Source: Takakia lepidozioides (taxonomy: Eukaryota; Plantae; Bryophyta). Taken from it: a stretch of DNA of 64,000 nt. The notes under the pieces were generated by a model, which was not told where the DNA came from, did not search any database, and saw only the letters and a program-made list of their open reading frames with translations. Location of the stretch: the NCBI GenBank assembly GCA_030704615.1, contig CM060733.1, positions 35,898,001 to 35,962,000 on the forward strand, in the 5' to 3' direction. A program made the translations under genes and the position numbers. Each line of letters opens with the position of its first letter. The stretch's first letter is position 1. Of this stretch, positions 7,791 through 36,970 are shown one piece after another.

Positions 7791-7989
7791 CCCCCCAAGG
7801 GGAAAGGAGTAGAAACAGGCCGTCGTGTCCATCAGTGAAAACAAGTTGTCAAGCTTGTGTGTACGAGCAAGCTATTTTTGCTCGTGGGTTCTCGTTAACT
7901 GAGAGTCAGATCACTCTCTGCCACAAGTCGCTGAACTTGTGCAAGTTTAAATTTTTGTTTTTCTGGTCAGTGGAGTCGGTCCTCGTAGC

Positions 7990-10900: not shown

Positions 10901-11123
10901 GTTCAACCATTTTCTTATTACGTACAACCTGATTCCATCCACCGCCGACCCTTGTGTGTACGTGAGCAACACTGATCCCCGTTTAATCTTGTGCATTTCG
11001 GTGGATGATGGCCTTGCATGCAGCGTTCAAACCCACATGATCACGCAAGTCCTCATCGAGATGAAAGGTGTTTTTAGCATCACTGAGGGTCATCCTGAAA
11101 TGTATGTGGGGTTGCACATCACA
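7990..11123 (+). mobile_element. Ty1/copia retrotransposon, degenerate gag-protease-integrase-RT (5' part; no 5' LTR or PBS found)
   Basis: Gag start MADNKDLGNIRKFSGQNFS*W; zinc knuckle CWNCGETGH; protease WYVDS; GAG-pre-integrase WHLRLGH; integrase RSDRGMEF...YTPEQNGVAER; RT SKWVFKVK...QFDVRTAFL...YGLKQ...SVDD. Many stops. Cut at ...MYVGLHIT by CACTA at 11124. Confidence 0.92.
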
Positions 11124-14100
11124 CACTACAGGAAAAGGGGGGCCTTTGCGACGCCTGAGCCACGCCGCAGCGTCGGGAAAACGCCGATTTCGGGCAGGGG
11201 GCAGGCGCAGAATTTGCGACGCCCGGCAGTCGCATGGGCGTCGCCAAAATGACGTCGCAAAAATGCGACGTATGGGGGTCGCGAGCCCCCACCCTAACTC
11301 CCGCGACTGTCGGACGTCGCTTTTCAGGCCGTCCGCGCCAATGCCAGGGGCCTCCTTCGAGCAACGTCTCGCCGTCGCAGCCCTCCAGCCGACGGCGTTG
11401 GTGGGGGCGCCGGCGCGGCGTCGCATCCCATTTTTTTTTTTCTAACCTGCCCGGGAGTCCCATCCTAAAACCCAAAAACACGTGGCGTAAGCCGGGTGGT
11501 ACGCCAAGCGACGCCAGTGCGTCGCTGCAAGCGACTATTGGGCGTGGCAAAAAAAAAAACAGCAAGAGCAGGAGTCGGGCTCCGTCACGCCCGGGCGTGG
11601 GTTTTGGCGACGCTCTGGCGTCATTTTTTTTAATATTTAATCCAAAAAAAAAGACATGGCGCAGGCAGGGTGGCGGGCTACGCGACGCCAAGGCGTCGCG
11701 GCTTGCAACCCCTGGACCAAAAAAACACGTCGCAGGGGGTGTCGGGCGTTGTCGCCCACAAATGGGATTGGCGACGCCCGACTATCGCAGCTTGCGACCC
11801 CAGCTCAAAAAACACGTCGCCATTGGCAATGTCCTGCAGTCGCGAGGGCAGCCTGGTGGGGGGGGGGTTTGATTTTGGGGGTGAATTGGGGGTGGTTTTT
11901 TGTTTTTTGCCTGGTTTTGTTTTTGGGGATGGGAGACCTTACAGTTCCATTTCTCTGATTTAGCAGGTACACAATTGATTAAGCATGAATCGAGGGTAAG
12001 GACGGTGCAACACATGAATAAGATGGAAGATGAAAAGATGGAAATATATTTACAGGAAATGAGCTGAAAAGCTCACAAGGGTTCAGTAGGCTGACCCTGG
12101 GACCTACATGGACTAGGACTAATCATCCTCATCCTCATCCTCAGTGGAGGACTCAGAGCTATCCGATGAGCCTGATGACTCCACGCCCTTTGCCAGAGCA
12201 CCTAAATGAGGCGGCGTTCCCCTAAGTCCCACAGAGCTCTCATCCAATCCCTGGCCATGACCCCCGACCTCATCCATACTAGTGCCTTGTAGTGCACTCA
12301 TCCCCTCCGTATTGGCCATGTTCTTCATGAGGGATTGCCAACCATGCTCCTTGGCATAGTTGTACTCTACCGGAGATGGCTTCCTCTCAAACGCACGTTG
12401 CTACTGATGCCATAAATTAAAGTCAGTTCTTCGCGATGATGGAGCCAGAAAGAAGACATAACAAAATCCATAGGGAAGTACGACTTACAAAGCGCAAGAT
12501 AAAACCCTTGGATCCGTCGGCGCCCCACTTGTGTGTGGATTTGTGCTTGTCAAGGCGGACTGTTGTTGCTTCGCGTGCCCGGTCACATTTGGCCTTGTTT
12601 GCGGCATCAGTCTCTCCCGCAATGAGTGCATCCCATGATACCTATGCACCCCCCCCCCCCCCAACAATTAGTGAATTACACACATACGTTGCATCGAATC
12701 TACCTCATTAATGCACATGCGACAAATGGAAGGTGACATGATTCAGGATTTGCCAACCTGTGTAATTCCATAAGGTGGTTTGGGTATGGCTCCCTTTTCC
12801 ATTGCCCTCCGAATGATCTGTCTGGCACGGTACCTCCTGTCCTTCAAGTTTTGCCCCCACCATCTTCATCACCCTTGTGTCACTCCAATTGCCCGGAAAC
12901 CAGCGGTCTAACTCACGGGCATACGCCCGCTTTGCGCCTAAGTGTTGATCAGCCCACTCGATGTGCAAAGGGAACCACCTCAATGCGAGTTCGAAGGTTG
13001 GCTTCTTCATAGCCTCCTAGAACGCACCGTAGGGGTCAACAGGGCGATTCACCTCCACCGGTGGCACCACGATCTTTGCCAACTCCACGTCTTGTATCGC
13101 CAAGGGCATGTTCTTCTTCCCATCCTCTCCTTTCTTTGTAGCCTCCTTCCTCTGCTCCTTTGTTACCCCACTGCCCTCCCCCGCATGCACACTCACCCCT
13201 TCCTCTCCATGGGACTTCTTCTTTTTTTTCTTCTTTTCCTTCCCTTTCTCCACGACCATCTCATTCCCCTTCCCCGCTACTTCCTCTCTCTTCTTCTCCC
13301 TCTCCCTTCTCTGTCTCTCCTCGGCAGCCCCTTCATTGATAGTAAATGGGATCTCGGGAGGTCGAGGCCTCTTCTTCTTACCTTTGGTGTTCGGGTCCTT
13401 CATGAACACCACGTGCTCTCCCTCATTGGCAACCCCACTGGACTGCACCATTGAGGCCAGCCATGTTGCTACCTCCTGAAGACAAATAACCCCTCCAAAT
13501 TCAAAAAAAGAAACAAACAACAAAGAAAATCATTCATGCAAAGAAAAGGATAAAACATAGAACAAGGTGCGACAGTTGTACCTTTGCAAGCTTGTCCGAC
13601 TCGCCCCCGGTGTCACCTGATGTGGCAGGAGTCCCCGTTGCCGGATGTGCCCACTCTATCCCCTCCCGGAGCGCCACTGGAAGTAAATTCCAGATGTGGA
13701 GCATAGCCGGCGGCGGCGCCCCGTAGTCCAGACCCTTCTTTACTGACCGCTCAGGCTCAGGAGGCGGCGTCGCTGATCAGCTAGGTCGCTCCGAACCGGC
13801 CCATACCTCCTCCTCTCTCTCCCCCCCCCCCAAATGCATATCAGGGTAGAAACCCTCACCCGACTTGACTTCTTCGAGGCGCTTCGCTATCTTGGCCACT
13901 TCATTGGCCCTCCTCGTCTCCTCCTCCCTCATCGACAACAATGGGCTAGCAATGGATGCTTTCAAATGCCCTTGAACCTGACGTTGGCCTTGGCAAGTGC
14001 AGCCAGTGCTGCGGAGGAAGGGGTCGCTATGGGGGTGACATCCAAAAGTTGCCCATACCGGGCCCCAAACGGGTGATGTGCTTGCCAAGGTACATTTCAC

Positions 14101-14400
14101 CCGTCTTGGTGGCCGGGGGTGTGCTCAACTGAGCATCCGAGCAACAACCTCCCGAATAGGAGAGCTGGCTGAGCCGGCCCTTGGCGCATCCAAGATATAG
14201 ACAAGAGGGGGGGTACTGGCCCGGGGGGCAGACGAGCCCTCCGGCTGCGGCTGTTGACGGGGCTGGTTAACCGTGAGACGCCCTGGCGCGTCACGCATGT
14301 CGGCAGAGCAAACAGATTGTCCGCCCCTTTCTTTGGGGCAGGGGACTTCTTCTCTTTCCCCATAAGCTAGCACCTGTCATGCAAACCCACAAGTTGGCCT
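11124..14400 (-). mobile_element. CACTA (En/Spm) element A: one terminus, GCGAC/GTCGC-rich subterminal region and TnpA-like gene
   Basis: Starts CACTACAGGAAAAGGGG exactly where the copia RT stops; about 700 bp of GCGAC/GTCGC subterminal repeats (11148-11845); opposite terminus not found; inner boundary approximate. Confidence 0.85.
12119..14373 (-). pseudogene. TnpA-like (Ptta/En/Spm-type) spliced gene of CACTA element A, disrupted
   Basis: Exons around 13582-14373, 12770-13476, 12490-12640 and 12119-12410. Segment VSWDALIAGETDAANKAKCDRAREATTVRLDKHKSTHKWGADG fits the W..L...K......H..G pattern of En/Spm TnpA-like proteins. Acidic tail; internal stops. Confidence 0.6.
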
Positions 14401-14479
14401 CATTAGGAAACAACCTCTACATTCCAGATCAAAAACAAAAAAAACCAAGCAGTCAGGGGCTGAGAGCAACAAGTGCTCG

Positions 14480-14587
14480 GGGTCTCGAGAGGGGGCAACA
14501 AAGAGAAAAGAAAAAGGTGGGGGGGAGTGACTGAGCACCACGGGCTCAGTCACCCCCCCCCCCCCCCCCCCATTTTTTTTTTTTTTG

Positions 14588-14627
<40 letters not shown>

Positions 14628-17600
14628 GCTGCTCACAAAAATAAACAAACCACAAGGGAGAGAGGGTGCAGAAAAAGTTAAAAAGATTGTACTCATAAGA
14701 CGTTGTTTGCCATAGCATTGTGGCCATTGACCCCGCACCCAGTTTGAGCGGAAACAAAAGGGACAGAACCTGCCTCTGTCAGGGGCTGACATTGGTAGTA
14801 AGACTTACCTTCATATATAGAATTTATCTGGGTTTTCCAAATATCCTCAAGAAATCCCTTCACACAAGCATCAATCTGATGTGTGTGATTTGCCCAATAA
14901 CTAGGCCTCAGGAGGGCCTGGGCTTTTGGCTCAGCCTTAAGACCTTCAAAGTTGGTAAACAGAGGTACAGGCACAATTCCCTTGATAGATTTGAAGAGAG
15001 CGTCTCTTTGGTGAGAGAACCCCGGACAGTGTATCAGAAAATGAGTACTGTCTTCAGATTGCCCACACAATGGGCAATTGCACTCTCCCTTTCCTCTCTA
15101 CTTTTGTTTGCTGTTCAAAGGTAGGCTTCCTGCCCTGAGTTTAAATTTCAGTCTAGTGCCGAGAGTGGGTAGACCCTTGAGGTCATCCAAGATGTCCTCC
15201 CCCATGTCACTGACTGGAAACAAGTTCAGGGAAGTTTTCTGCCTAACTTCATTTTCAACAGACAATCTCATGGCAACAGACATGGCTTTGGACACTACAG
15301 CCTCTAATCAGATTTATCAACCCATATTGCAGATCCATACTCCAAGGCAGGTCTAATAATGCGACAAAGCATGGTTTTCTTAACCTCAGAGTTGATCCCT
15401 CTGCAGAAAAAGTTAAAAAGAGAGAGGGAAGATATTTTTTGTCATGTCAAGACAAAGATAGGACCCCTAGGGTTGTTGTCAAGAATAAGAAGAATAATTA
15501 GACATATCAGCCACTTAACAGTGGCACCATCCATCAATCATCAAGCTCACAAAATCCAGAATTACATCCATGCACTGTAATGTGTTCATGTCAGTAATAT
15601 TCATAACCCAAAGAATATTTCACTGATGCTGATTGACCACCAGTCATGATCATGATACACATTCAAAGGTCTGGGTGGGATGGCGGATACTTGACCATAT
15701 TTTGGCCTTGATGTGGTGCAGGTCAAATGGTCATACAGATTTATTGTCCGCAAGCTGTAATCCAAGCATACTTACTCAAACCCCGTGGGTGTCATAGAGG
15801 GTTTTATTTTTTTTTTAAATTTTAAAGAACACTTGGATATCACAGATTTAAATACCTTGCCCTGCCAGTATTTGTTTAAACTAGTCTGCAGCACAGCTTG
15901 CCCCCACAGGGGAGGGGGATATGTCTGGTAAGTTTTCCAGAATACCCTTATACCATTATTTCTTGCTATAGCTGAAAATCAAAGCTCATGACACAGCAAG
16001 GTAAAAATAAAGGACTGCATACACATCATGTGTCAGTATATGATATTGTCAGCACACCCTTATTCACATCATTCCACGTTTGACCATGTCATTACACCAT
16101 GTCCAGGGGGTATTTCCACTTAACCACCCTGGCTACCTCAAAAACCAGTTACCAATTATATTGCTGCCATATTTCAGTGTCAGCCGAATAGCCACAGGCA
16201 GAATCTTCACCATACCCTGGCCTAAGCATCTAGCTAGCAAAGCTATCCGGGTTGGAACATAACAGGGGCATTTTACCAACATGGGTACCCGAGTAGCTGC
16301 AGCAAACAGTTCCTGGCAGTCTGTCATTTTGTTTCCAACTACCATAAAGTAAACAAAGCAAACTAGGGCCTGGAAAACAGATGTGTGTCTCTCACACAAG
16401 CCATCATAAACCCGGCTGTCACAACAAAGCAGAGGTCTTCCACTGGCTGGGCCGAAATGGCCCACCTTAGAAAGCATTACACTTGTTCTTCATAAATAAA
16501 GGAAGGAAAGAGGTAGGATCAAGAAAAACCATAGAGTAGTTTAGTTTTTCAACATTTTAAGATGTGTCCATGGCCAGCGATTCCTTCCCCAGCTCTGCAA
16601 CCCACTTGGCATCCAGCAACACCTAGACATCAGTATATTAAGTGGAAGCCCTCACCTGTGCCCATCCCAAAAACAACCACAACGCATTGTGAGTTAGTGA
16701 GGATGCACGAGGTGAGTAGCAAGCTTCCACACTTGCTATCGAGGTCAAATACACTTCAATCTAAGCGCATAGAATGCCAAAGAAAGCAGGGAAGCAAACC
16801 AAAAATAAACCTTTTTTACTGTTTGGGGGAGAGTCGTCATCTCTCCACAAGCCTAACCGTGTAGGGAGGACTCCGCCAGCACCACAGCACTGCTACCTTA
16901 ACCAAAGCAAAGTCTTGTCAAGCACAAGAAAAAAGAGCTTGGTCTCAAAAGGTAGGGAATATAAAGGGAGGAAGAGAGACTTCCTTATTCTACCAAGACG
17001 CCGCCATTCATCAAAGATCCAGAGGAGGGCTCCTTGGGAAACGTCATAAGCATGCAGGTGGTACCTCCGCCATCACTGCCGCGGTTCCCTTGTGCAACAA
17101 AAAAACAGACAACTGAGACACTGAATCTTCCCTCATCTCTAAGCCACCGCCATCGCCTTAAAGAGCCCGCCTAGGCGACGCTCACAGGAGCCATAAACAC
17201 TCAAGGATTGGCAGCTCAAGGTATCTGCAGCACGAGCACCATCGCTCCTCCCAAGCTGCCATCGCGCACGCTCTCGCAGCGCGAAAAGAAAGACATTGGG
17301 GTTGCGCAAGATTTTCCCCTGTCTGGCCCGTCATTCATCTTTCTCAGGATTAAAAACATCCGCCAACCTGTACGCCCGATGGACGTTGTCCGTTTCTCAT
17401 TCGCGGAAGATGAAAGACATCGTGCGTTCATCCCGTCTTGAACTCCACGGATGCAGTCCGCATTTCATCTAGGTTAGATGAAAAACATCGGGGGTTTATA
17501 CTTGTCTTGCCCTGTATTTAGGTCCTGTCAGATGAAGTCCTTTTTTCATCCAAGTTGGATTGAAAAAGTAGAAACTGACGGGAGTTTTGCAACTCACAGG

Positions 17601-20344: not shown

Positions 20345-22645
20345 GACAAGATAAGATATTTGATGACCCTGTGCATGCTGTAAGGCCTCTTGGTTCAGCC
20401 TGTATATGGGACCAGGTGAGGGCCCTCACTTAATATGATTCATGAAGCTTGCAATTGATTGAAACCTAGCAAGATGAAGTGAAGTCGACTCAAGCTGTTT
20501 CTTCAGGGAGCTGATTCAAATCTGCCCCCATATCTTGATCTTTCTGGCTATGCTTCCAACTCTTTCTGTTGAGCATTAGTGCATTAGATGAGCTTTACTA
20601 GAACACATACTTTCTATTAATGACTCTTGCATTTGATTTCTGCTACACTACATGATGGTGGTGGATTTGCTATTTACAGCCAAGCATGAGCTTTTGATTT
20701 CGGTTTATAGTACTAGTATGATGCTGTGGCTTGAATGATATCAAGCAGCTAAGTAAGAGGACATAGGGAACCCCAATCTTTTGTTTTTAGGCCATGTATG
20801 TTGTCTGATGCAAGCCATTTGGTTTCATGTCCTTCTTTACTTGTTTGTGACCTTGCAAGTACCGTACTGAAGCAGATACAGATTATCCCAAAACCTAAAA
20901 CGGGCTCTGGGATAGATTGGCTTTACTGCTATGGCATGTACCAAGCAGCACAGTAACCTGAAGGATCTTTTTGAACTCAGACAATATGTTTAGAGGTATC
21001 TTAAGACATCAAGGATTAAGCTCGTACAGGCCCTGTATATCTCTCTATACCTCCATGAACGCTTTGTGATATGGTAAACATTTTGCTAGAGTATATACTT
21101 GTTGTACCTTACTGAAGCCAGATTATGGAACATAATACAATATCTTCTGTTGTGTTCCCTGTTTACATACTGTTTAGAAATATCTACAGATATACAATGA
21201 AACCATGGGTGATGAAATTCAGCAATCTGAAGACTTGCTTTCCTGCTTTGCACAGTGGTAAAGTAGCAATATGTATAACTGCTTGCTACTCAACACCTTG
21301 TTACCACATTTATACAATGGCCCCAGACCTAAACCAGGTCTTGGGGCAAAAAAACAAGGTATGATGTCATACCCCTTATGTGTAAATGTTGTACAAGGCT
21401 GTCTACTGCTTTGATATGGCCATAAGGTTACATAAAAACTGGATTTTCCTTTCCAGACTGTCAATGTAATCATGGAGAGTAAATCTAGTAAGGTGAACAA
21501 GAATTTCCGCTATGAACTGTTGCTAATGTTACATCTGAAACATACACAGACATGGGATACATGACTGGGTCCCTGTTTGGATGAACATTAAAGCAACTCA
21601 TATAGTGAGGCGGATCTTTATGTAGGAGGTCATATGGTGTGCTAGCCATTGGGCTCCAGGCCAAGTATGTTGTTTACTGCAGGCCCTATGTTTTTCTGGA
21701 TTTCTTTACAGTCTGTGATAATCAGTAATCACTTGCTGCTCAAAACCTTTTGAATCCACTTATACACTGGCCCCAGACTGAAACCAGGTCTTGGGGCCAA
21801 AAACAAGATGTGTGGGCATTCCCTTCATGTGTAAATGGTTTAGAAACTGTTTACTGTTCTGATCTGGCCATTATGTTACATAAAAATTGGAACTTCTTCT
21901 CCAGTCTGTTAATGTGAGCATGGGTGGTAAACTTAGCAAGATAAACATGATTTTCCTGCTATGAACTGTTTCTAATATTCCATCTGAAGCATACCCTTGA
22001 TTGGGTCCCTGTCTGGATGAATATTAAAGTGAATCATATAATGAGGTGGATCTCTATATATCTCTATATATCTGAAGACTTGCCTTCTTGCTTTGCACAA
22101 TGGTAAAGTAGCAATATGTATAACTAAATGCTACTCAACACCTTGTTACCACATTTATATAATGGCCCCAGACCTAAACCAGGTCTTAGGGCAAAAAAAC
22201 AAGGTATGAGGTCATACCCCTTATGTGTAAATGGTTCACAATTTGTATGATGCTTTGATATGGCCATAAGATTACATAAAAACTGGAACTTCCTTTTCAG
22301 AGTGTTAATGTAATCATGGGGAGTAATGTTAGCAGGGTAAACAAGTTTTTCCTGCTATGAACAGTTGCTATTGTTACATCTGAAAGCACACCCACACATG
22401 TGATACATGATTGGGTCCCTTTTTGGACAAACATTATAATGAAGCATATACTAAAGCGGATTTTTATATAATCCCACCCCCCCACGCAAAAATTTCATGA
22501 ACCGTGAGATCTGTTATATGTCATCAGACTGGTTTATGAATGCAGATTGATAGTGCCTCGTTATGAGGCTGATTTGTCGTAAAAATTGACAAAGACCTTG
22601 TTTGGTCTTGTCCATGTCTCAACAAGACATTTTATCTTCCCTCTC
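20345..22645. repeat. Unclassified repeat unit, inverted copy, with internal ~350-400 bp triplication (21225-21622, ~21735-22058, 22070-22470)
   Basis: Ends with the reverse complement of the GAGAGGGAAGATA...GGACAAGACCA block (22590-22645). CAGGTGAGGG...CACTTAATAT at 20413 and CATGAGCTTT..GATTT..G.TATAG at 20685 match the minus strand of copy 1. Confidence 0.7.
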
Positions 22646-22822
22646 AGTTAGGAAGAAAACTTCCCTGAACCTATTTCCAATCTGTGACATGGGGGAGGAC
22701 ATCGTGGATGCACTCAAGGGTCTATCCCATTCTTGGCACCAGACCTAAATTTAAACTCAGGGCATGAAGACTACCTTTGAACAGTAAACAGAAGCAGAGA
22801 GGAAAGGGAAAGTGCAATTTCC
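22646..22822 (+). mobile_element. LINE fragment (same RTE-X-like family)
   Basis: Reverse-complement match to ~15075-15250. Confidence 0.8.
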
Positions 22823-23884
22823 CTGACGTACCTCTGTTGCTGCAGCAGCTGTTGCTACTGGTGCTTGAAGCGAGCTGGCGTGGAGAGCTGTTGCGGTGCT
22901 GTCGCGGCTGCCAGCGGCGCGGATCCCTGCCGCTGCAGGGCATCTCTCCCCCGCTCACCACGGCTCTCTATCTCTTCAGCTCGTTTAGGTCGCGCATCTA
23001 CGCGGTGTTCCTACCACACAGGGGAGAGAGACATCAGCCCGTGCTTAGGGCAAGAAAGCAAGAGAGAAAGTGAGGGAGGAGGCGGTGCTTACCTTGGGCG
23101 TTGGAGCGGCGTTGGGGCAAACTCCTTGGGGCTTTGCGACCACCTCAGGCTCAGCAGTAGATGCGTTTCTCCTCCACCCTAAACCCCACTCTCTGAACTA
23201 CCTCTCTCCCAAAACAAAAACGAAAATGGGAGGGGAAAGAGATGCTTCAAGCACTTAGGGAAAAAAAAGGGCGCGTCGCCTACGTGCGACGCCCGGCCGT
23301 TGCACGCCTGCACCCCGCCCTTTTTTTGAAATGTAAAAATAATATTTGCGACGGCCAGCCGTCGTTGCTTGCGACCCCCGGCCCCATAAAAAAAAAAAAA
23401 AACACGTCGCCCCCACGACGTCTTGCCGTCGCGGGGTGCGACCTCCAGGTAAAAAATGGAAAAAACTCGTCGTCAAATGCGACGCGAGGGTATCGCAGGA
23501 GGCGACGGCCGACATTTCTGGGTTTAGGGTTTAAGGCCTTTTGGGTTTCTTAGTTTTTTTTTTCCTCATATGGTACTGGGTTAGGGTGTTTGTTTTTCTT
23601 TATGGTGTTGGGTTTTGGATTGGCGGTTTTGGTTGTGGGTCTTGGGGTTAAAAGGATAAACGGTGTAATTAGGATTCACATACCCAAAATGTGGTTCAAT
23701 CTGATAATCACAAAGTGCTGGGTCTCAACAAAATTTTCCATGGTGTGGGCATCCTGAAGATAGAACGAGATGAAGTATTTATTGTCTTGGGCTCTAGCAC
23801 CATAGGGATGCTCCGCCTTTGGTTACCAATTTTGAAAGCCCCGAGGCTAAGGCATAGGGTTTTTTTGCCAATGGTTTTTGAGAA

Positions 23885-26800
23885 ATGAAAGTGTTGGTGG
23901 TGTGTGTTAATTATGATGCGATGGTGATGAAACATCGACCCGTCTCCCTCAAGGATGGGGAGGTAGTACCACATATCGATTGTGGCCCTAGAGCGATCGT
24001 TTTTCATGGCGAGGAACCACCTATTGCACCTGATCCAATACAGGCTGTCGGGCACAATCGTAGAAGGGACCGGGGCCAAATTTCAGGTGATGTGGAGGAT
24101 GTTGACACTCCGGGTTCGAGTCGGGCGTGCCGCGGGTTGCCCCCTCGCGGGCCACCCCTTTCAACCACGTTCACCTTTGATCCCCCCGACAGGATTGAGT
24201 GTTGGTGCATTAAGTGTTGGGAACGGATACCGCCAGGCGGCACCAGACCACCAAGGCGGCGACCGCATGTTGTCGAAAAACATTACAAGAAGAACAAGAT
24301 TGTGGATGCGGCAAAGGTGAGTGTTTTTTCCACCCCTCTCATTAACATTCATTTAAGGTACATTTATGTTTATTTAATAATATAGTATGATTGGTAAGCA
24401 TACATGAATCAAGATTACGACATAAGTATTGATGCGTCGTTCACTACGCACATTGCAGCCACGACTTGATGCCCAAGCTCGCAATCACATTGCACAGGCG
24501 GCATTTCGCGCCGGTCTACTTGCAGAATTTGTGCCAGAGCATGTGCCCTATGTGACCAGTTGGTTCCCCCAGCAGCACGTAAATGAGATGCGTAGGATCG
24601 AGGGGTATCGTAGGTGTCGTAGGCGTTATGGCCGGCGACGAGCAGGCCCCCCCCCCCCCCCCCCCCCCCCCGTCTGTTTATTTGCCTAATCCACCTCCGG
24701 AACCTGATCCGGACGTTGCACCCCCGGCTGCACCTCCGACATTACATCCTCAACCACCTCCACTTTCATCTCCTCCACCAACAATACCACCTCCACCTCC
24801 ACCACCACCACCACCTCTACCTCCACCTCCACCTCCACGTGCATGTGCCCCCCGAACCCCTAAGAGGGGTCAGCTTCGCCCTAGGTTTCCTCTCATTTGG
24901 CTTGGGCGGCCTGAGCCGGATCCTCGCCCCCGATGGAAAGCGCATAAGACTATGTTACTGAGGACCGTCCAGCCTCGTTGTTGGGGGAATCATCTCGACC
25001 CTCTCACCCCCATCCGAGAAAATGTGGAGTTCGAGTATTGGGGGAGACGGCATGTTGTAAGAGCCGCTACAGACCCTGCTATGGGTCGGGGTTTATTCAC
25101 GGTCAATGATATTGTGGTTCCTCCTCGGAGAAACAGCATGGTGGACTTGTTTCCCTACTACGGTCCATACTACACCTCCGCGGAGTTCATTACGCCTTGA
25201 AACCCCATACATCTTACCCGGCAATATTGCTGGGCTGGTCAATAGTTCTTTTGGTCATCCTAGGAGAACCAATGTAGTATGGGACGAGCGAAGTGATGGG
25301 CATGAGAGCTTTTGTGGTCATACGTCAGTATACTGTGAGGGGATGCACCTGTTTGTGATGACATGTGCTAGTAGGACTATTAGGGCTGGCAGCGAACTAT
25401 TTGCATCATACGAGTTCTCCCGGGATGATTGGGACCTCCGATTACAGCGTGAGTGGAATGTGTATGATAGAAATAGGGTTCAAATATTTATTTTAAATTC
25501 ATTTAAATTCGATTTAATTCAAAATTGGTGCAAGGGTAAGTGCGTCGTTGGGGAGGCAAATGTTTTTTTTTTTTTTTTTTTTTTTTTTCTGCTGGATCTT
25601 TGTACAGGTGTTGCACACATATTTAAGCACATGTAGGAAAAAATGAAGCTTGAGCCACATCCGTTTGTTGGGTGCAATGGCATGAGAGGATTTTTTTTTA
25701 CATTGATAAACAAAAATTGGTTGATAGGATGAATGCGTCATTGGGGGGGGGAAATGATTTTGTTTGGGTTTGAAACTTTGCATGCGTGTACGTTGCGCAC
25801 ATACATGTAATTATTGAATGACATATTTGATGCACACACACATTGAAGGTTGTTGTTTGCATTCCGCTTATAATGAAGTGTATGGTTGCAATGACACATT
25901 ATAATATATGTCCCTATGTTCATTTGTTCTTATCAAGACTTTGTCCATCCCTTCCCGGTTCTTTCTCTTGGCACCCCATCCGAAAACAACCCAAGTACAT
26001 CAAGCGGGAGCCGTGGGCGAGACGCCGCTCCCACGGTACCAGACGATGATGACGATGACAGTGACAGTGACAACAACAATGAGCATGGAATTAACCAGGA
26101 GGATGTGCAAGCTATGGAGGATCTCTTAATGCATCATGTGGGCGCTGATGCATCCCATGGAGAGGGAACCCGGCCAATCGATGATCATGACATGGCCCCC
26201 TCAAATGACATGGAGAGGGAGGTGAGAACTCCCTTGTACGAAGAGGCGAAAGTGAGTCGACTTTCAACAATCTTCCTTTTGCTCAATCTTCAAATTCGAT
26301 TTGGCATAAGTAATGTTGGGATGTCTGCCATAATGCAAACTATTGCAGACTATATCCTTGTTCCACACTTGAAACCCAAGATGCCACGGTCGCGGAAAGA
26401 GGCGCGCGAAGTCTTGGACTCTATGGGGATGAGCTATAAGATTTTTCATGCATGTCCATGTGATAAAACCCTATACTACGGAGAGGATTCGTATCTCACC
26501 AAGTGCCCAAAGTGCAAGAAAGACCGATATCGGGATGATGTCCAATGGAAAAAAGTACCACGCAAGGTATAAGTGTCATTCCCCCTCGCATGGAGATTAC
26601 TTTATTTAATCTTCTTAATGTATGTAAAGTGTATTCCACAAGTTTAGGGTTTAGAGAGTAGTACTCATGTAAGATCTGATTGTGGTTTTGGAAGGAGTGA
26701 GTGAGGAGTGGAAGGAGCGACGTTCGGTTTTGACCATTCACACCCAAATGAGGGAGAGGCTGCATAAAGGGAGAGGCATAAAGGTGTTGTATTATGTGTG

Positions 26801-29697
26801 CTAATGGGATGATTATATGTGGGGGACGTGAGGTATTTCATCCTAGAAAATGCATTACTTTCCGATCATCCCGCGATTGAGGGCACAATACCGAAGCCTC
26901 GAATTGGCCAGACTCATGAGATGGCACGCCTCGCATCGGAGCCCCCCGGGAAAGGTGTGCGGGCCACAAGATTCACAAGCATGGAGACATATTGAAGAGA
27001 TGTGGCCTTTTCTCTTGGAGGCCCCACGACATGTCCACCTCGGCTTCTCCTCGGATGGGGTCAACCCATTCTCTGTCCAATCATGTAGTCATTCCACTTG
27101 GCCGGTGACCATGGTGAATTACAACATCCCTTCGTATCTTTTAATTAAAAAAGGCCATATCATGTTGGCTGCCATTGTGCCAGGTGAGTGTACTCATTTC
27201 ATGTTTATTATTGCCTTAGACTTTACATTAAACTTCTGATCTCTGACGCAATTCGGATGTAAGATTGATGAGTGACATAATCATGGAGTAAGACGTGTAA
27301 TTCATTTTGTAGTATAATTTGCATATTGGTGGAGCATTGAAACAATGATGTGAATGTCTCATAAGGAAAAAACAAGTGGCAAACATGGACACGTACTTGC
27401 GACCTCTTGTTGATGAACTTAAGGAGCTATGGAGGGGGGTCCTGGCATTGGATGCTTCACTTGACCCTATGGCCGGACAATCTTTTCAGATGAGAGACAT
27501 CTTGCTTTGGACAATGCATGATTATCCAGGTATATTATATTCCCCATGAACAACCCGCGTACATTCACTTGTCAATGCCGGATAATATCGATGAGGATTG
27601 GGATTGATTGAAATAGCGGCGACAGTCTTGTGCACCGTAGTGGGGTAGATGGCATTATAGGCCATGCACATGACAACTTTTTGTTTTTGCTAATGTGGCG
27701 GGATGTGTAGTACAGGACTAACTGTTTGCTCGGGGCTAAGCACCAAAGGGTACCATGCATGCTTGCATTGTGGCGATGATCTTGATGCACATAGTTCCCG
27801 CCATCTTTCACAAGATGGTGTATCCCAACTACCGCAAATTTCTTCCTATGAGCCATCGATGGAGAAGAAGAGATAAACACTTGTTTGATGGCAAAGAGGA
27901 AGTACGTCCCCCCCTCCCCTATGACACCGCCCGGGCAGTTTTGGGAGGACCGATGGAAGGAGGCCCATGCGGGCATGGACGGTGAAGTGGACGTGCCTGA
28001 CATGAAACGACTTTCAATCTTCTACAAGTTGCCATATTAGGCAGTATATATTCCACAAAAACACCGTCAATATCCCTATGCATGCATGTGATATTGCACA
28101 TTTGGTATGCATTGCATTGTCACTTTCACGGAAAAAAAATTGTGTAAGTCTTTGTGGGTGGGGATATATGTAGGACCTGAAGATTCGTCATCTTCTAAAT
28201 CCCATGCATATTGAGAAGAATGTCTGCTCGCCCCTGTTTCGGGTTCTTCATGGCACGCTGACAAAGAAGGGAGTGACGCAAAAGGAGATTCTCTCGGTGT
28301 TAGAAAGGAGCTTGAAGAGCAGGGTCGCATATTCCATCTATGGGCCGAACAAAATGGTGTGGATCCAAAGGGTGTTGTACGGTGGAAGTATATGTGCGCA
28401 CCTTGGCAATGGACAAAGGATGAATACAAGAAAGTGATAGCCACCATAAGTGCTGTCCGAACACCAACTGGTTATGGGTCATCCCTCCGTACGAAGTTCA
28501 GCGAAGAAGACGGGGTCCATGGTTTGAAGTCTCATGACTACCACAATCTATAGCAAGACATCTTGCCCATTGCAGTACGTGGGACATTGACTCCCGAGGT
28601 TCGTGAGACAATCTATGGATTGGGAGGCTTGTTCCGATGGATTTGCTCTAAAGAGTTGGAAGAAGCAGATTTTCCACGCATGAAGAAAGAGGCGGCGGAG
28701 GTAATGTGTATGTTGGAGATGCACCTTCCTCCCTCCTTCTTTGACATCCAAGTGCACTTGGTAGTGCACTTAGTGGAAGAGGCTTCGATTGCCGGCCCCG
28801 TTCATTTTCGGTGGATGTACTTCCTTGAGCGTTATATGAAGACTTTGAAAGGACTTGTAAGATAGATGGCGCACCCGGAGGGTAACATGGCGGAGGGGTA
28901 TACGTTGCAAAAAACTATGTTCTATTGCACGGAGTACATGGCAAGGGTGGATGAGGAAGCCCCTCAGATGTGGAAGGAAGAGGAATATGCATGAACCAAT
29001 GACATCGTTTTGCCCAAAAAATCGAAGAGGGTAAAATTACCGACCTTGGTGATTGAGCAAGTGCATGACTTCATACTGAAGAACACCCCATCCATACATG
29101 AGTGAGAGACAAGATACAATAATCTTGTTCAGCAATGAGAGGAGGAGACGCTTGCATGGAGGCGGAACCATCCAAGGCCGATTACTAGACGCCCACGACG
29201 AGGAGCGGACCGCCGGAATGTTCCTTCACAAAATTTGCCCAAGGAATTGCAGCCTCTAAGTTCATTCCAACAGTGGTTTTGGACTTCAGTTTATGACGTC
29301 GTTGCTCAAGGAGAGGTGGTTTCAGATTTGGTGCAAGACATTGCAAATGGCCCTTCTCAATTCGCGACCTCATACACGGCGGTTTGGGTTTACGGTAGTC
29401 ATTTCCGCATTCGTGCTCTTGACATAAAGCGCAAAACAACCTTTGATTCTGGCTTGTGTGCCACATATTGGCAAGACTCCGTGTGGGGCAAGGGAGATAC
29501 ATGACCTGCTATGAGCAAACTTGAGTACATTGGAGAGCTTGAGAGCATACTCTAACTTCAGTATACAAGGTACCGGCCTCTTCTCTTCAAGGGAAGGTGG
29601 TTCCAGCCACATCTTGTGGGGCCCTCCGCAACACTAGTGCAAGATGATTGTGGTTTCATGCGCGTCAATGTAGATAAGCTCAACCCTACTCATCGTC
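23885..29697 (+). pseudogene. TnpD-type CACTA transposase (transposase-associated Zn motif, Transposase_21, DUF4218, DUF4216), spliced, with stops
   Basis: Putative exon 1 IECWCIKC...VEKHY (donor GTGAGT at 24317); HACPCD...CPKC...RY; HYFPIIPRL...MRWH...DSQAW...SDGVNPF...STWPV; MDTYLRPLVDELKELW; GLKSHDYH; PPSFFDIQVHLVVHL...GPVHFRWMYFLERYMKTLK; DDCGFMRV. Interrupted by the gypsy LTR at 29698. Confidence 0.92.
24432..25450 (+). pseudogene. Proline-rich + SET-domain (putative lysine methyltransferase) ORF nested in the putative TnpD intron 1; frameshifted
   Basis: SET motifs in canonical order: GRGLFTVNDI...LFPYYG (from 25084), GNIAGLVNSS...TNV (25220-25249), VMTCASRTIRAGSELFASY (ends 25411). 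Frame breaks at the poly-C run (~24650) and at ~25195. Confidence 0.75.
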
Positions 29698-30424
29698 TGT
29701 CGCGCACCTCCCTTCGGTAAGCTCCCCCTCAAGTCATAGTTACTCGCTTTGATGCGCGCGCCTGACTCCCAACCTGGCCGTCGGGCCAACTTGGAGCTTC
29801 GGCTGCTCACCGGGGCATAACGGTCCCCCTTTGTTCTCCCAAAGAACCCTCCACCGATTTGGAACCAGCGGGAATTCCCTTTGGTAGTTGGCAGTCCGGA
29901 ACAGCTCCCCACTCTTTGGTCGCTTTCCGGCTCGCTCGCTTACTCACTAGTTTTTGGTCACCAACGGGCTTGCACCGTTCTCGGGGTTACTACTCCCTAT
30001 ATATACTTCTATAGCTGTCCGCGGGGGTTTCACAACCAGCCATGCCATTTTATGGCGAACCACCACGAAGACCCTCGATTCCCGGTGGTGAGTCGCGGTG
30101 AGTCTTGGCCCGCTCACCACGGCCCCTATGGACCGTGATGAGTCCCAAGACTCCCCACGACTCCCACCACGAGGTCTCCGCCCCCATGGTGAGTCCTATG
30201 CCACCCCCACTAAGTCCCACTAAGCTACCACCACCCCTTGTGGAGCCACCCCCACCGCAACCCGGTGTGCGGGGCTCCACCTAGTGAGCGCCTCCGCTTC
30301 CCTGAGTGCCTTGGGCACTCAAGGGTGCTTCAGCCCCCCATACGTATCGCTGCTGCTGCCCACACCACAGGGGCAGCCCCTCATGTGTCCCGACCCCCTG
30401 CCCTCAAGGCAAAGGGCCGCGACA
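29698..30424 (-). repeat. Gypsy LTR (727 bp, TGTCGCG...CGCGACA)
   Basis: 7-bp terminal inverted repeats; adjacent PPT-like GGTAGGGGTGTG on the minus strand (30425-30436); near-identical reverse-complement copy at 35405-~36116. Confidence 0.88.
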
Positions 30425-33400
30425 CACACCCCTACCAACAGGGAGTCGATGTCCTCATCGACTTGTCCATTTTGTAGAAACGAACATCCAAGTTGTGGCG
30501 TCCCACATCAAGGAGTTTGTTTCCGTACCATGGCGTCCCATGGCAAAGAACCAAACCCCACACTTGACTCTACTCTCCACTAGCTAGTTTGGCCGACTTC
30601 CTCCAAGTCCCGGCCAAGGGTGGAGCCTCTCCAGCTCCTCCTAGTGCACTCTTCTTGGCCTACTTCAAGGCCAAGGAACAATCCTCCCCGAGGATCGAAT
30701 CGCCTTACTGCAACAACCTTGCTTGCGATCGCTCATGAGGCCGCTTTTGGCATCACCTTGAGCAAGGGTTCACCTGGAACCCTCTTTGACTAGGAAGATA
30801 ACCTTGAACCAACCGTGCGCCCCAATCACTACAATTGGGTCCGCCTTGGAATGCTGGCCTGAGGTACGGGAACACGCCGAAGCCGCACTACGACTTCGTC
30901 CCGAGGCTACACGATTATAGTACGTGAACGGAAGCACGTAGCTTCCGCGTTAGCCCGCACTACAAGGCAACCCCCTCGGTAGCGCAGTTATAGTACGCGC
31001 ACGCGCCAGGTGCGTACTAGCACGTGAACTCCCAAAGAAGGCGCAAGTTTCCTTGCCCCTTGGATGGGGGTCACCTGATTTCGGCACTACGCAAACACAC
31101 GATTAACCCAATTTACCTCTCCCACTTTTATAAGCTAGCATGCATTCTACACACTAGCCAACCATACCATGCATCACCATTCCAAACAAAATAGGACGCA
31201 CAACATTTGGAATCCATTTCATTTATAGCACGTTTTGGTACAATACAAGTTTTTGTAATCGGATTCCTAAGCTAGCTAAGCCGGGCTAAGCATGCATTTC
31301 CTCCCCCACGCTCCAAGGTTGATGTCCCCATCAACGCTTCTTCCGCTTTTGAGGTCGCCCTTCGAAAGCTGCAACCGCCTCGGATGCGTTTCCCATTTCT
31401 GAGGCACGCACCCAAGATGCCTCCACATGATGATAGCCCTTCCATTTGACGAGATACTCAGTTTCTCGGTTCTTGAACCTCCTCAACTTAAGTATTGCCT
31501 CCACCTCGTACTCAGGTTCATTTTCATGATCCAACAGCATAGGTGGCGGACGCAACACTTGATGCCGATTCGGACGCACTTCATCTTTGAAGTAAGGCTT
31601 CAAAAGGGAGACATGGAATACTGGGTGCACCTTGCTGTTTGTCGGCAGCTCCAATTCATACACATCCTCATTCATAACCTTCCGAATGCGAAAGGGTCCC
31701 GCATACGGAGGTACGAACTTCGGACTCACTTCCGGAGGTAGTCGGAAATTCTTGATGTTCAACCAGACCTCTGTGCCTGCCTCAAACTTCACTTCCCTCC
31801 GCTTCCGATTCGCCTGCCTTTCATACCGTTTCCTAGCTTTGGCAATGTTGTACTTTGCGAGCTTCAACAAACGCTCGCGTTCTTCCAGTACCGCCGCTAC
31901 TGCCGGTTCCTCAACGTCCTGGGCGGCCCAACTTGTCGGCACCAGAGGTGCTTTTCCAAAGACCAATACAAAAGGGGAAACTCCCGTTGCGGAGTGTTAT
32001 GTGTTATTATAACAGAACTCTGCCGCGTCTAAGTGTTCCACCCAGTCTGTTTGGTCTGCCGACACGTAATTCCGCAAGATCTGCTTCACTACGGAATTCA
32101 CCCTTTCTGTTTGGCCGTCGGTCGTAGGTCGGAAGGCGGTGCTCATCTTCAGCCTCGTCCCCATCTTCTTCCAAAGTGCTCTCCAGAATTTACTCGTAAA
32201 CTTTGGATCGCGGTCCGAGGCAATATCCTTCGGGACTCCATATGCTTTAAGACGTGGGCGAAGTAAAGTCGTCCTGTCTCCTGCGCCGTTGCCGTCTCCT
32301 TGGTGGGGATGAAATGGCCCATTTTACTGAACCTATCTACCACCACCATGATTGCATTGAATCCTTTTGACAGCGGCATAGCAGTCATGAAATCCATCGA
32401 GACGCTTTCCCAAGTCCCCTCTGGAATCGGCAAGGGTTGTAACAACCCCGCTTGCTTTTTGTACTCGCTCCGGTTTTGTTGGCATGTGGTGCATGTCTTG
32501 ACATACTCCTCTGCCTCCTCCCTCAGTTTGGGCCAGAAATACTCTTTCTTCAAGAGTGCCGCAGTGCGCTTGGCTCCGCCGTGGCCCGCAAGCGGGCTAT
32601 CATGGCATTCTCTCAAGAGGCTATCTCTGATCCCTCCCTTCGGCACGTAGAGACGTTTTTGCTTATACCGGAGCAGTCCATTTTGCAAGTGCGATTTAAC
32701 CCCCATCCTCAAGTCCTGCATCACAGACTTCGCCAGCTCATCTTTCCGGCAAGCCTTCCGGATCTTCCTTTGGAGCGCCGTCTCGCCCTTGTACACCAAC
32801 AAGAGCTGCTGCTTTCTACTTAAAGCATCGGCCACCACGTTGTCTCATCCCGGTTTGTACTGGATATCCACGTCGAACACCGCCAAAGTATCTTGCCACC
32901 TAAGTTGTTTTGGGGACAACTTGGGCTGCGTGGCAAAATACTTCACCGTGACATTGTCCGTGAACACCTTCACTGGGTTGGAACCAACATAGTGGCGCCA
33001 GAGCTCAAGGCAATGCACCACCGCCTTCATCTCTTTTTTGTGCGTCGGCCACCGTCGCTCCACTTCATTCAATTTCTTACTTTCGTAAGCCACTGGACAT
33101 CCATCTTGCATAAGTACACCCCCAATCGCGAAGTCCGACGCATTTGTATGTATCTCGAACGGACGATCGAACTCCGGGATTTTCAAGACTGGAGCTTCCG
33201 CCATCCGTTGCTTCAATTCAGCGAAAGCTTGGCCACAAAAAGTGTTCCATACCCAGACTTTGGATTTACACAGAAGGTCTGACAACGGCTCCGCGATCTT
33301 GGCGAAATTTCTCACATACTTCCGGTAATAGGAGGCGAGTCCTAGGAAGGATCGCACTCCCGGGACCGAAGTCGGAGGCTCCCAGTCCAAGATCGCCCTC

Positions 33401-34287
33401 ACCTTTCTGTCATCCATTTTGATCCCATCCTGTGTAATCACATGCCCCAGGAACTCCACTTTTGTGACCCCGAATTCGCACTTTGAAGCTTTGGCATACA
33501 GCTTCCCTTCCCGCAATTTTTGGAACACCCTTTTGAGGTGCTCCAGGTGCTCCAGGTGCTCCTCCTTTGTTTTCGAGTACACCAAGATGTCGTCGATGTA
33601 CACGATCACAAAGTCATCCAACCACTCCTGGAAAAGGGCTGTTCATCAGCGTGCTAAATATCGCTGGTGCATTGGTGAGCCCAAAAGGCATCACCAAGAA
33701 CTCATATGAACCATACCTTGTCCTGCACGCGGTCTTCTCCTCATCTCCTTTCGCCACCCGAATTTGGTGATAGCCGGAGCACAAGTCGATCCGGCTGAAA
33801 TACTTCGCTCCTGCCAACCGATCGAAGAGGTCGTCGATCCTTGGCAAAGGGTACCGGTTTTTGATAGTCACCTTATTCAGAGCCCTGTAATCGACACACA
33901 TCCGCAGCGTCCCATCCTTCTTGTCTGCAAATAGCACCGGGGCTCCGTAAGATGACTTACTCGGCCGGATGTACCCCTTTGACATTAGATCCTTGAGCTG
34001 AGTCTTCAGCTCGACCAACTCTCTGTGGCTCAACCGGTAAGGCGCATTGGCAGGCGGTTCCGATCCCGGTATCACCTCAATTTTGTGGTCAACTCCTCTT
34101 CGCGGTGGCAAGCCGCTTGGTAAATCCTCCGGCATCACATCCTGGTATTTCTCCAAAATCCCCTTGATCCAATCTGGGCTCGGCTCCCCATCGCCTTCTC
34201 CTTTCACTTCTCTAATGTAAAGCAAAAACTGGGGCTCGTGTGCCTCCTCCACGGCCCACTCCCTTGCTGATAGAATGGATCGTCGCA
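29698..34287 (-). mobile_element. Ty3/gypsy chromovirus: RT-RNaseH-integrase-chromodomain plus 3' LTR; gag/protease end lost
   Basis: [14 protein letters not shown]...GYHQIR...[10 protein letters not shown]...VYIDDILVYS; RNaseH TNASDFAIGGVL; integrase H..GH..C..C and SMDF...VVVDRFSK; GPY/F motif YAGPF; chromodomain EYEVEAIL...YLVKWKGY...SW. Frameshifts present. Confidence 0.95.
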
Positions 34288-35404
34288 CACTGGGAAAAAA
34301 AAAACCTTTTCTTGCCCTTTCTTTCATGGCAGCCCTTTCTTGCGACGCCAGGCCGTCGCATGGTGGCATGAAGGGCAAAAGGCCCCTGCGACGGCCGGGC
34401 GTCGCAAACTGCCCGGCTGCCCTATTCATGCAAAACAAAAAAACAAGTCACAGTTTGCGACCCCCGGCCTCATAAATCCATTCTTTCAGAACAAAAAAAC
34501 ATGTCGCAGTTGGTGATGGTTGGCCGTCGCCGTTGCGACCCCCCGGCCTCATAAATCCTAAAAAAAACGTCGTAGGTTACAACGCGTGGGGGTCGTAGGC
34601 AGCGACTGCAAGGCTTTCTAGGTTTAGGTTTAGGGTCTTTAGGGTTCTTAGTTTTTTTTTTTTTTTTTTTTCATATGGTACTGGGGTAGGGTGTTTGTTT
34701 TTCTTTAGGGTTTAGCTTGTTGTTGTGACCTTCTTGTAGATTGTGACATTCATTTTGATAATCTCTTGATACCACATCTGTATGTGTTGCTCCAACATAT
34801 TCATTGCCTCTGCCTTCTTTCTTGAAAACCAGCCACAGCCATATTTGATCAATCATAGAATTAAACTACAATATGCATATACATGTACAATCAATCGAAG
34901 GGATGGGTCCAGTTCGGTGCGAGAATTGTTATGTAGCTTTGATTTTGTGTCTAATCAACTTGAACATCATCATCCGGAGCTTCTTCATCCTCATTAAGCT
35001 ACAAGTCTTCTTGGTCAGCGGAATCATCGTCATAAATGGCCCGGCCCTCAAAAGGCACCTCCGAATCATCCTCCACCTCGTTGTCAATGGCCGTGTCTTC
35101 GTCTCCTTCTCTAACATCCGTATCTTCTAGAGCTTCATTATATAGGGTCCAGGATGCATTGTCCGGGGCGTCATCATCTTCTTCTACCCCCTCTACCCAA
35201 CCTCCATCATCAGCATCATTATGACCAGTCTCTCCGTCCACCGCAATTGTCTCACCCCATGGAGATCCGAGACCATGATAGATACATCTTCCTCTTGGCT
35301 GAGTATGCACAACCACCTTCCAATTCCCCCCTCTTGTTTTGTCATCGGAGAAGAAAACTTACTCCAAGTCTGAAGGCCGTGAAAAAAATTCATCGGAGGG
35401 ACAA
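34288..35404 (-). mobile_element. CACTA element B right end plus TnpD C-terminus, inverted relative to the rest of the element
   Basis: Terminus CACTGGGAAAAAAAA at 34288; subterminal region matches 23252-23610 in direct orientation; minus strand encodes PSDEFFSRPSDLE*VFFSDD...WKVVVH (DUF4216 C-terminus) plus an acidic tail. Confidence 0.85.
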
Positions 35405-36116
35405 TGTCGCGGCCCTTTGCCTTGAGGGCAGGGGGTCGGGACACATGAGGGGCTGCCCCTGTGGTGGGGGCAGCGGCAGCGATAGGTATGGGGGGGCTGA
35501 AGCACCCTTGAGTGCCCAAGGCACTCAGGGAAGCGGAGGCGCTCACTAGGTGGAGCCCCGCACACCGGGTTGCGGTGGGGTGGGGGGCTCCACAAGGGGT
35601 GGTGGTAGCTTAGTGGGACTTAGTGGGGGTGGCATAGGACTCACCATGGGGGCGGAGACCTCGTGGTGGGAGTCGTGGGGAGTCTTGGGACTCATCACGG
35701 TCCATAGGGGCCGTGGTGAGCGGGCCAAGACTCACCGCGACTCACCACCGGAATCGAGGGTCTTCGTGGTGGTTCGCCATAAAATGGCATGGCTGGTTGT
35801 GAAACCCCCGCGGACAGCTACAGAAGTATATATAGGGAATAGTAACCCCGAAAACGGTGCAAGCCCATTGGTGACCAAAAACTAGTGAGTAAGTGAGCGA
35901 GCCGGAAAGCGACCAAAGAGTGGGGAGCTGTTCCGGACTGCCAACTACCAAAGGGAATTCCCGCTGGTTCCAAATCGGTGGAGGGTTCTTTGGGAGAACA
36001 AAGGGGGACCGTTATGCCCCGGTGAGCAGCCGAAGCTCCAAGTTGGCCCGGCGGCCAGGTTGGGAGTCATGCGCGCGCATCAAAGCGAGTAACTATGACT
36101 TGAGGTGGAGCTTCCG
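35405..36116 (+). repeat. Second gypsy LTR (inverted, 3' end truncated by ~20 bp)
   Basis: Reverse complement of ~29717-30424, differing mostly by transitions and small indels. Confidence 0.9.
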
Positions 36117-36144
36117 CCCGTGCAACGGCCAGGCGGCGACGCCA

Positions 36145-36970
36145 GATCTGGATATGTATTAATGCTCAATGGAGGGCCTGTTTCATGGGGTAGTCGCAAA
36201 CAAACTTGTACTGCTACCAGTACAATGGAAGCTGAATATATTGTCGCTCACCTTGCCTGCCAAGAGGTCATCTGGCTCCACCGTCTTTAGCATGACCTGC
36301 GTTATGTTCAAACCGGTCCTACTATCCTGTACAGGGATAATCAGGCTGCCATTCGCCTTGTCCGGAATCCATAAACGGACCAAGCATATTGATGTCAAAT
36401 TCCACAAGATTCGTGAGGCCGAGGCAACTGGGGAGATTCGCATCACATACATCAACACCACATACAATGTGGCTGATGTACTCACCAAGGCTCTCCCCCG
36501 TGACAAATTCTGCCAAATGAAGACTCTGCTTGGCCTTACCGACGTCGTCATCGGTCCATCAACCTCATCCTGAGTGGGAGTGTAGTAGTAATATATCTAG
36601 GTTCTTATACGGTATGAGGTTAGTTGCTCTATACAGGTTCTTGGTATATACAGATTCTTGATATATACAATTTTTGATAAGTTAGGGAACGATTAGTTGT
36701 TACATGCAAGCATCCCTGCCAGGATGCATGAAAGCTTGGCAATGGTGTGACTACCTATATAGTTCAGTGGCAGAGTGCGTACAGATTCTGGAGTTGCAGT
36801 AAGTCAGTGTGTGAGGCAATCACGGAGGCTTTTGCTGTGTAGTGCAATCTGAAATCTACAACTAATACATTCATTTTTATCATTCATGTGAGTCAATGTG
36901 CCTCTTGTGCGAGTGATTGCTTTGCTTAAATATAGACTATCCTTGGAGAAGCATTAAAGGTGTTCACACA
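36145..36970 (+). mobile_element. Ty1/copia 3' part: RNaseH C-terminal half, PPT and 3' LTR (36581-36970)
   Basis: [31 protein letters not shown]...HKRTKHIDVKFH...NVADVLTKAL; PPT GAGTGGGAG at 36572-36580; LTR TGT...ACA. Probably the same element as 7990-11123. Confidence 0.85.

Follow-up and report, generated by a model that had tools for sequence, protein, structure and literature searches.

The locus described here raises the question of whether a SET-domain reading frame lying between two coding blocks of a CACTA transposase is a working part of the transposon, and of what its product might do. The window (the whole stretch analyzed, 64,000 nucleotides from Takakia lepidozioides) contains a dead copy of an old land-plant CACTA (EnSpm) clade. 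The signals described in an earlier note on this DNA were found where it had placed them: an exon with a CxCxxC..H motif, a GTGAGT donor at 24317, an Arg-rich stretch, a polyproline tract, SET motifs in order, and a TnpD block from 25937.

The SET exon runs on the plus strand from 24459 to 25450 (3' end approximate) and comprises an Arg-rich segment (24591-24647), a polyproline linker extending to ~24860, and the SET domain itself (~24949-25429). The motifs GRGLF and FPYYG lie in one reading frame and GNIAGLVNSS and AGSELFASY in another. As previously noted, the copy is frameshifted, the first break being in a run of 25 C residues (24647-24671); to this we add a second break, the scar of a ~95-nt deletion (25189-25221, plus strand) that removed the i-SET/DG-P segment and shifted the frame. 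One contig (X6 record 22) has 128 letters at this site compared with 33 in the window, which accounts for the change of frame between the two SET halves; loose contig ends fall at 25188 and 25219, and profile positions 150 to 191 are missing. The pieces of the window copy were searched separately. A profile of 64 relatives, from which the window's own pieces were excluded, matched the N-terminal half (24949-25182, plus strand; GRGLF, FPYYG) at E 4e-16 and the C-terminal half (25220-25429, plus strand; GNIAGLVNSS, GSELFASY) at E 7e-18, with no further match anywhere in the 64-kb window. ESM Atlas features identified the C-terminal half as SET (0.95, 30/30); for the N-terminal half, all leads were below 0.9 and unrelated. 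Pfam alone gave E 0.19 for the C-terminal half, and Pfam and PDB sequence searches with the window pieces were too weak by themselves. A phmmer search with the C-terminal half returned four SET proteins with a GNIAGLINSS motif, one of them from the fern Psilotum.

The fold was examined in an intact natural relative, P0008 of locus L006, which AF2 modeled as a SET domain with a pLDDT of 87; AlphaFold with 6 sequences gave a pLDDT of 32. Foldseek matched the P0008 model to SETD8 (E 1.4e-7), and VIA Z scores of 12 to 13 were obtained to Set1, SET8, EZH2, PR domains, and MLL, all at 14 to 24% identity. The best Atlas match was an uncharacterized streptophyte SET cluster (TM 0.77). PF00856 was matched by 52 of the 64 family members at E≤0.01. 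The SET assignment proposed earlier is upheld by these results, and the model indicates that the SET exon of the family has a SET fold.

Conserved motifs extend across ~60 proteins that are merely 30 to 60% identical: GxG (46/47 and 45/47), the Asn (60/62), the Glu (58/59), and the terminal Tyr (59/59). An (F/Y)xG motif is also conserved, and an aromatic residue is usually found two places past the terminal Tyr. The NHS motif reads NSS, the His being replaced by Ser in 56 of 62 proteins, and the family alignment contains no pre- or post-SET cysteines. The Phe/Tyr switch position is occupied by Val, Ala, or Ile, and Phe fills the position of SET7/9-Y245 / EZH2-Y641 in 41 of 51 members. In established SET chemistry, a non-tyrosine switch residue favors di- or trimethylation. 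The best sequence match among solved structures was LegAS4/RomA (E 3e-3), which departs from the usual motifs in the same two ways: the His of NHS is absent, and the switch residue is Ile. LegAS4/RomA is an H3K14 methyltransferase (PMC10653858). Methyltransferase activity of the family SET is plausible given these residues, and its mark cannot be assigned because the solved SET domains all lie at a similar distance from it (14 to 24% identity). Nor did the fold ranks allow a substrate to be assigned.

Next to the SET exon lies a Zn-knuckle exon (23922-24316, plus strand; 5' boundary approximate) that is Transpos_assoc-like, with CxCxxC at 24200 and His at 24281, and that ends at the phase-0 donor GTGAGT (24317). 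The three Cys and the His are invariant in 10 elements. PF13963 (Transpos_assoc) matched 7 of these 10 Zn exons with a best E of 0.002, which is under the curated cut-off; the window's own Zn exon did not match PF13963, and no solved structure was related to the exon. In run X9, a loose contig end at 23915, finishing in CAG, suggests a further exon upstream.

In contigs of two probable RNA runs from different studies (X6 and X9), the Zn exon is joined in frame to 24459, with removal of a 142-nt GT..AG intron (24317-24458, plus strand); the joint was recorded as 24284->24457 with 30 collinear letters. No such joint was listed for DNA runs. That X6 and X9 are RNA is a guess made by the tool; one of the two lacks the transposase intron near 27184-27364 and is for that reason probably RNA. 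The junction contigs derive from a sister copy whose exon end has diverged (21/32 letters identical), and an unspliced contig is present too (X9 record 25). In relatives, the Zn exon closes with a phase-0 donor, and a phase-0 acceptor lies where the SET open frame starts or close by; in L004 to L006, the stop codon upstream of the SET frame itself provides the acceptor AG. In Ceratopteris, the gene model P0068 enters SET through this acceptor as well, yet from a different 5' exon, the Zn exon being skipped. The splice from the 24316 donor to SET that had been envisaged is therefore seen in contigs, with phases conserved in relatives, and a Zn-SET isoform very probably exists. The SET frame does lie in the TnpD intron on the same strand, as the earlier note had it, but not with a free-standing start at 24432; that ATG was rejected, being inside the spliced intron, and the exon is entered at the acceptor 24458|24459.

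In L004, L005, L006, L009, and L010, the acceptor of the next transposase exon is likewise in phase 0, and a junction from the Zn exon to 25937 was not seen among the contigs. Position 25936 is G in every covering DNA contig; in the window the acceptor reads CAA, and the window copy has lost its far acceptor because this G is gone. In eight relatives, a stop codon occurs 5 to 13 residues past the terminal Tyr and is followed by an AT-rich spacer with no GTRAG donor. In the window, two candidate donors after SET are in phase 1, compared with the phase-0 acceptor. A SET-transposase fusion was rejected on these grounds; because of the early stop and the lack of a strong donor, SET and transposase are best read as alternative products.

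The SET exon sits within a recognizable CACTA element. The left terminal inverted repeat (CACTACAGG...; 11124-11141, plus strand) lies in the reverse transcriptase (RT) of a Copia element, interrupting the RT ORF (10248-11123), and is followed by a left subterminal array of TGCGACG-type repeats (11142-11850; families D9 and D17). A degenerate second gene in divergent orientation occupies the TnpA position (12123-14377, minus strand) and would belong to the same element; the same head-to-head layout is found in L001. This gene had no Pfam match, and there is little similarity between elements. An internal repeat array with telo-box-like motifs (23260-23620; families D9, D17, and D18) is probably a bidirectional promoter, and a comparable array lies between the two genes of L001. 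The TnpD exons (25937-29697, plus strand) encode an acidic exon 2, Transposase_21 (PF02992, E 1e-22), DUF4218 (PF13960, E 2e-24), and the start of a DUF4216-like part; they are collinear with L005 and L006 and are broken by stops and frameshifts. At 29697 the transposase is split by a Gypsy insertion, and its remainder and the right end of the element are inverted (35404-34288). The severed C-terminal end (34999-35404, minus strand) continues the reading across the LTR, with a 5-bp target site duplication (TSD) matching at 4/5 positions. The right subterminal repeats and the degenerate right TIR (CACTG...; 34288-34722, minus strand; families D9, D18, and I16) are joined to the Gypsy RT. The rearranged copy thus retains CACTA/CACTG termini, the left at 11124 and the degenerate, inverted right end at 34288.

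When the window was compared with family contigs (run X1), A/T was present where the family has G/C at 129 sites, versus 48 sites. This A/T excess is consistent with methylation-driven decay, and any protection that the copy enjoyed would therefore not have been lasting.

Several neighboring features were recorded. The Gypsy element in the transposase (29698-36113) has a 727-bp LTR (29698-30424) and a chromodomain-type pol on the minus strand. A single inverted block comprises the right end of the CACTA element, the tail of its transposase, and the second Gypsy LTR; the TIR is joined to the Gypsy RT, an arrangement suggestive of alternative transposition. The host Copia (7835-11123 and 36114-36600) has gag, integrase, and RT on the left and RNase H, a polypurine tract, and the start of an LTR on the right; a portion of the RT-RH is absent, and the window yielded no 5' LTR to match. 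Three degenerate tandem units of ~400 to 450 bp occupy 21225-22470, and LINE/SINE-like fragments are dispersed at 1489-1946, 14700-15250, 22646-22823, and 62068-62310. Exons of an intron-rich host gene on the minus strand (~44000-63300), judged by eye from the ORFs at 61594-61941 and 62446-62739, appear to resemble Niemann-Pick C1.

The distribution of the SET exon was examined by profile search. This yielded 62 homologues, including proteins of Ceratopteris richardii and Calypogeia fissa. In the searches for relatives, P0001 was discarded as a repetitive false match. No ordinary host SET gene was among the 62 (E≤1e-3), and so the near-identical host exon that could have marked a capture was not found. 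Close similarity to the host classes E(z), ASH1, TRX, ATXR5/6, and SUVH/SUVR was likewise absent, and Pfam showed the SET family only (no pre-SET, AWS, post-SET, PHD, or SRA). Among 15 elements with usable flanks, 14 (L001, L002, L004 to L009, two in L010, L011, L012, L016, and L018) have the SET frame 5' of a same-strand CACTA transposase; homologues thus reside inside TnpD-bearing CACTAs across species, as had been anticipated. In the remaining element, L017, a TIR-like end and the Zn exon are retained, with no transposase within 10 kb. TnpD domains and subterminal repeats are present in the window and in relatives, and clean TIR pairs were found in L006, L008, L010, and L016. Two elements are complete by their ends, each with a 3-bp TSD: L008 of Ceratopteris (TAT) and, in Calypogeia, the inner L010 element (TCT). 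In the metagenome contigs L006 and L016, the flanking 3 bp are not matched.

The contigs of two DNA runs covered all 30 bins of 23400-29300, and 4,161 X1 contigs stack over the SET part as they do over the transposase, a depth that does not equal copy number. Exact-pattern scans of viral and prokaryotic contigs, which have limited sensitivity, found no relatives. The Zn-SET-TnpD order is constant. The second gene and TnpD are arranged head-to-head in L001, in L010, and in the window but converge in L006. In Calypogeia fissa (L010, 4669-19700), the insertion site of one SET-bearing CACTA (5440-16968) lies directly behind the SET exon of a second, divergent CACTA that also bears SET. In Ceratopteris richardii, L008, L017, and L018 correspond to chromosomes 3, 17, and 36; four "SET domain-containing" gene models belong to the family (three loci were checked), and the elements contain one more small exon upstream as well as long tracts of AT/AC microsatellite.

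Selection on the SET gene was assessed by Nei-Gojobori dN/dS, which ranged from 0.12 to 0.39 across pairs that are not independent and in some cases are near saturation. In the L005/L006 pair, the SET core gave 0.15 (0.08-0.26), compared with 0.20 and 0.13 for two transposase parts. These values indicate that the SET gene is under purifying selection, and the neutrality that would be expected of a passive fragment was not observed. SET and transposase distances were correlated across 11 elements (Mantel rho 0.70, p 2e-4), and the two trees gave identical groupings with modest support, the window, represented in the trees by its C-terminal half only, being on a long branch. Identity of the window copy to relatives is about 27 to 45% for SET and 37 to 50% for the transposase. 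Because the SET gene appears to be selected and tracks the transposase, we regard it as ancient core cargo, and it is almost certainly a core gene of this CACTA family. The data argue for one old gain of SET, inherited along with the transposase. The clade is possibly older than the liverwort/fern split, since it is present in both groups; horizontal moves of whole elements could also have contributed.

A working model for the function of the cargo begins with one TnpD locus that would produce two proteins sharing one Zn-knuckle exon. Use of the near acceptor, with an end after the SET stop that would require early 3'-end formation, would give a Zn-knuckle, a low-complexity linker, and a minimal SET, while the far acceptor would give a Zn-knuckle and the transposase. 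Basic stretches may direct nuclear import. The SET isoform is predicted to be a SAM-dependent lysine methyltransferase whose product is probably di- or trimethyllysine, because the switch residue is aliphatic and Phe occupies the SET7/9-Y245 / EZH2-Y641 position. The shared N-terminal module would bring the isoform to the element's own nucleoprotein complex, where histone tails would be methylated and the element's chromatin would be kept open or reopened.

The steps of this model differ in strength. Judging from the motifs, the SET isoform is probably catalytically active; a histone substrate near the element's own copies has roughly an even chance, and a net anti-silencing effect is more doubtful. 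The reading that we prefer, in which an active enzyme methylates histones on or close to the element's own copies and favors their expression, falls slightly short of an even chance. A still more specific version, in which the liverwort/fern CACTA clade encodes a self-addressed histone-methyl writer, delivered by the shared module, whose mark blocks host silencing by PRC2, H3K9, or DNA methylation, is tentative and on balance unlikely. Spm TnpA isoforms arising from alternative splicing are sequence-specific anti-silencers (10.64898/2026.08.24.746577; PMC13547354), and PRC2 represses transposable elements in bryophytes (10.1101/2022.10.24.513474); by analogy, this context favors the model of histones on own copies.

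Other readings must be weighed against this one. An active enzyme might instead modify a non-histone substrate, either the element's own transposase or second protein, thereby tuning transposition, or a host silencing protein; SET7/9, for example, methylates DNMT1. A minimal SET with no reader or pre/post-SET modules would suit such a role, folds of the SET7/9 type are ranked on a par with histone-specific ones, and an N-terminal module in common with the transposase would place the enzyme beside element proteins. However, the nearest profile and fold matches (RomA, MLL/Set1, SET8, EZH2, and ATXR5) are mostly histone methyltransferases, and we consider this reading unlikely, though the strongest of the alternatives.

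A little less probable is that the mark is repressive, serving self-restraint on the element's own copies or, in the manner of vSET, trans-silencing of competing elements or host defense genes. Chlorella-virus vSET is a minimal, multi-methylating parasite SET enzyme. The minimal SET with its aliphatic switch residue recalls such enzymes (RomA and vSET), EZH2 and ATXR5 are among the fold matches, and viral SETs match the fold at similarly low identity. Nevertheless, the exact-pattern scans of contigs found no close viral or prokaryotic relative, and the characterized accessory factors of plant transposable elements, VANC and TnpA, activate their elements.

It is less likely again that the SET fold is catalytically dead and is kept as a binder (of a histone tail or SAM) or as a decoy against host writers. 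Inactive SET proteins exist, SUVH9 being one, and they match the fold; in addition, NSS replaces NHS throughout the family, and a post-SET segment is absent. Yet GxG, Asn, Glu, and the terminal Tyr are almost invariant in ~60 proteins, and the active RomA departs from NHS in the same way. Finally, neutral Pack-CACTA capture of a host SET exon, confined to this copy or genome, is scarcely credible: although such capture is well known (PMC8616336) and the window copy is broken, SET occupies an identical place in elements from a fern, a liverwort, and metagenomes, dN/dS is far under 1 with divergence parallel to that of the transposase, no host donor gene was found among the 62 homologues, and contigs stack over SET as they do over the transposase.

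The preferred reading, a histone methyltransferase acting at the element's own copies, would matter beyond this locus. The characterized plant transposon counter-silencers (VANC and TnpA) are DNA-binding regulators, whereas a selected, splice-coupled cargo with a methyltransferase fold suggests that transposons can themselves write chromatin; if true, this would be enzymatic, self-addressed counter-silencing, which is not yet shown for any plant transposon. The question bears on the conflict between PRC2 and transposons in seed-free plants, and it can be tested directly, since intact copies exist in Ceratopteris, a fern that can be transformed, as well as in a liverwort. There is also a consequence for annotation: Ceratopteris and Calypogeia models annotated as SET-domain or unnamed host genes are transposon parts (KP509_03G089000 and KP509_36G030500 were checked) and may inflate counts of the SET family.

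SET domains have been found on transposons before. The earlier note had placed SET outside the standard TnpA/TnpD layout, and this stands insofar as no report of SET in land-plant CACTAs, or of the shared-exon design, was found in the open-access literature (Repbase may already list such elements); it had, however, missed precedents in HarbingerS, MuDR, Helentron, and Plavaka. SET cargo occurs in oomycete HarbingerS and MuDR elements (PMC12730594), and the proto-Helentron SET resembles Clr4 (PMC4067079). These too are transposon-encoded, SET histone-methyltransferase-like genes, but they belong to other superfamilies and hosts, and no shared-exon splicing is described in the available text; as described there, the Helentron SET is Clr4-like, whereas the CACTA SET is equally far from all solved SET domains. 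Closer in superfamily is PAG2 of the red-algal Plavaka elements (EnSpm superfamily), in which SET is fused to an N6-adenine methylase within the three-gene cassette of giant elements (10.1101/2025.02.11.637652). Both are long-retained SET cargoes of EnSpm/CACTA-superfamily elements with a proposed role as chromatin modulators; compared by description, PAG2 is a separate gene, whereas here a SET-only exon lies in the TnpD intron of classical plant CACTAs. Family members match SET alone in Pfam, and no N6A methylase was among the genes called in the loci examined.

Among enzymes, the CACTA SET resembles RomA/LegAS4, vSET, SET8, and PR domains in being a compact SET without post-SET cysteines, and it shares with RomA the NHS variant and the aliphatic switch residue; it differs from minimal parasite SETs in its low identity (14 to 24%), in having no ankyrins, and in being encoded by a nuclear transposon. 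VANC of VANDAL elements (MuDR, Arabidopsis) binds DNA motifs and causes hypomethylation, and it is not a known writer. Both VANC and the CACTA SET are element-encoded factors with a proposed action on chromatin at copies of their own family; unlike VANC, the factor encoded here is a candidate writer enzyme. SETMAR/Metnase, a host SET-transposase fusion protein, likewise has SET and transposase sequences in one locus; here they would be alternative products with no fusion. The closest parallel in design is En/Spm itself, with which this family shares CACTA termini, a 3-bp TSD, subterminal repeats, and a Transposase_21/DUF4218 transposase (PMC13547354; 10.64898/2026.08.24.746577), as well as alternative splicing of one gene into two proteins (the far splice being predicted here) and an accessory product with a possible role in regulating the chromatin of the element. 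In En/Spm, for which no SET domain is described, the alternative product is the DNA-binding TnpA (PMC13547354; 10.64898/2026.08.24.746577), whereas in the clade described here it is a SET-fold protein.
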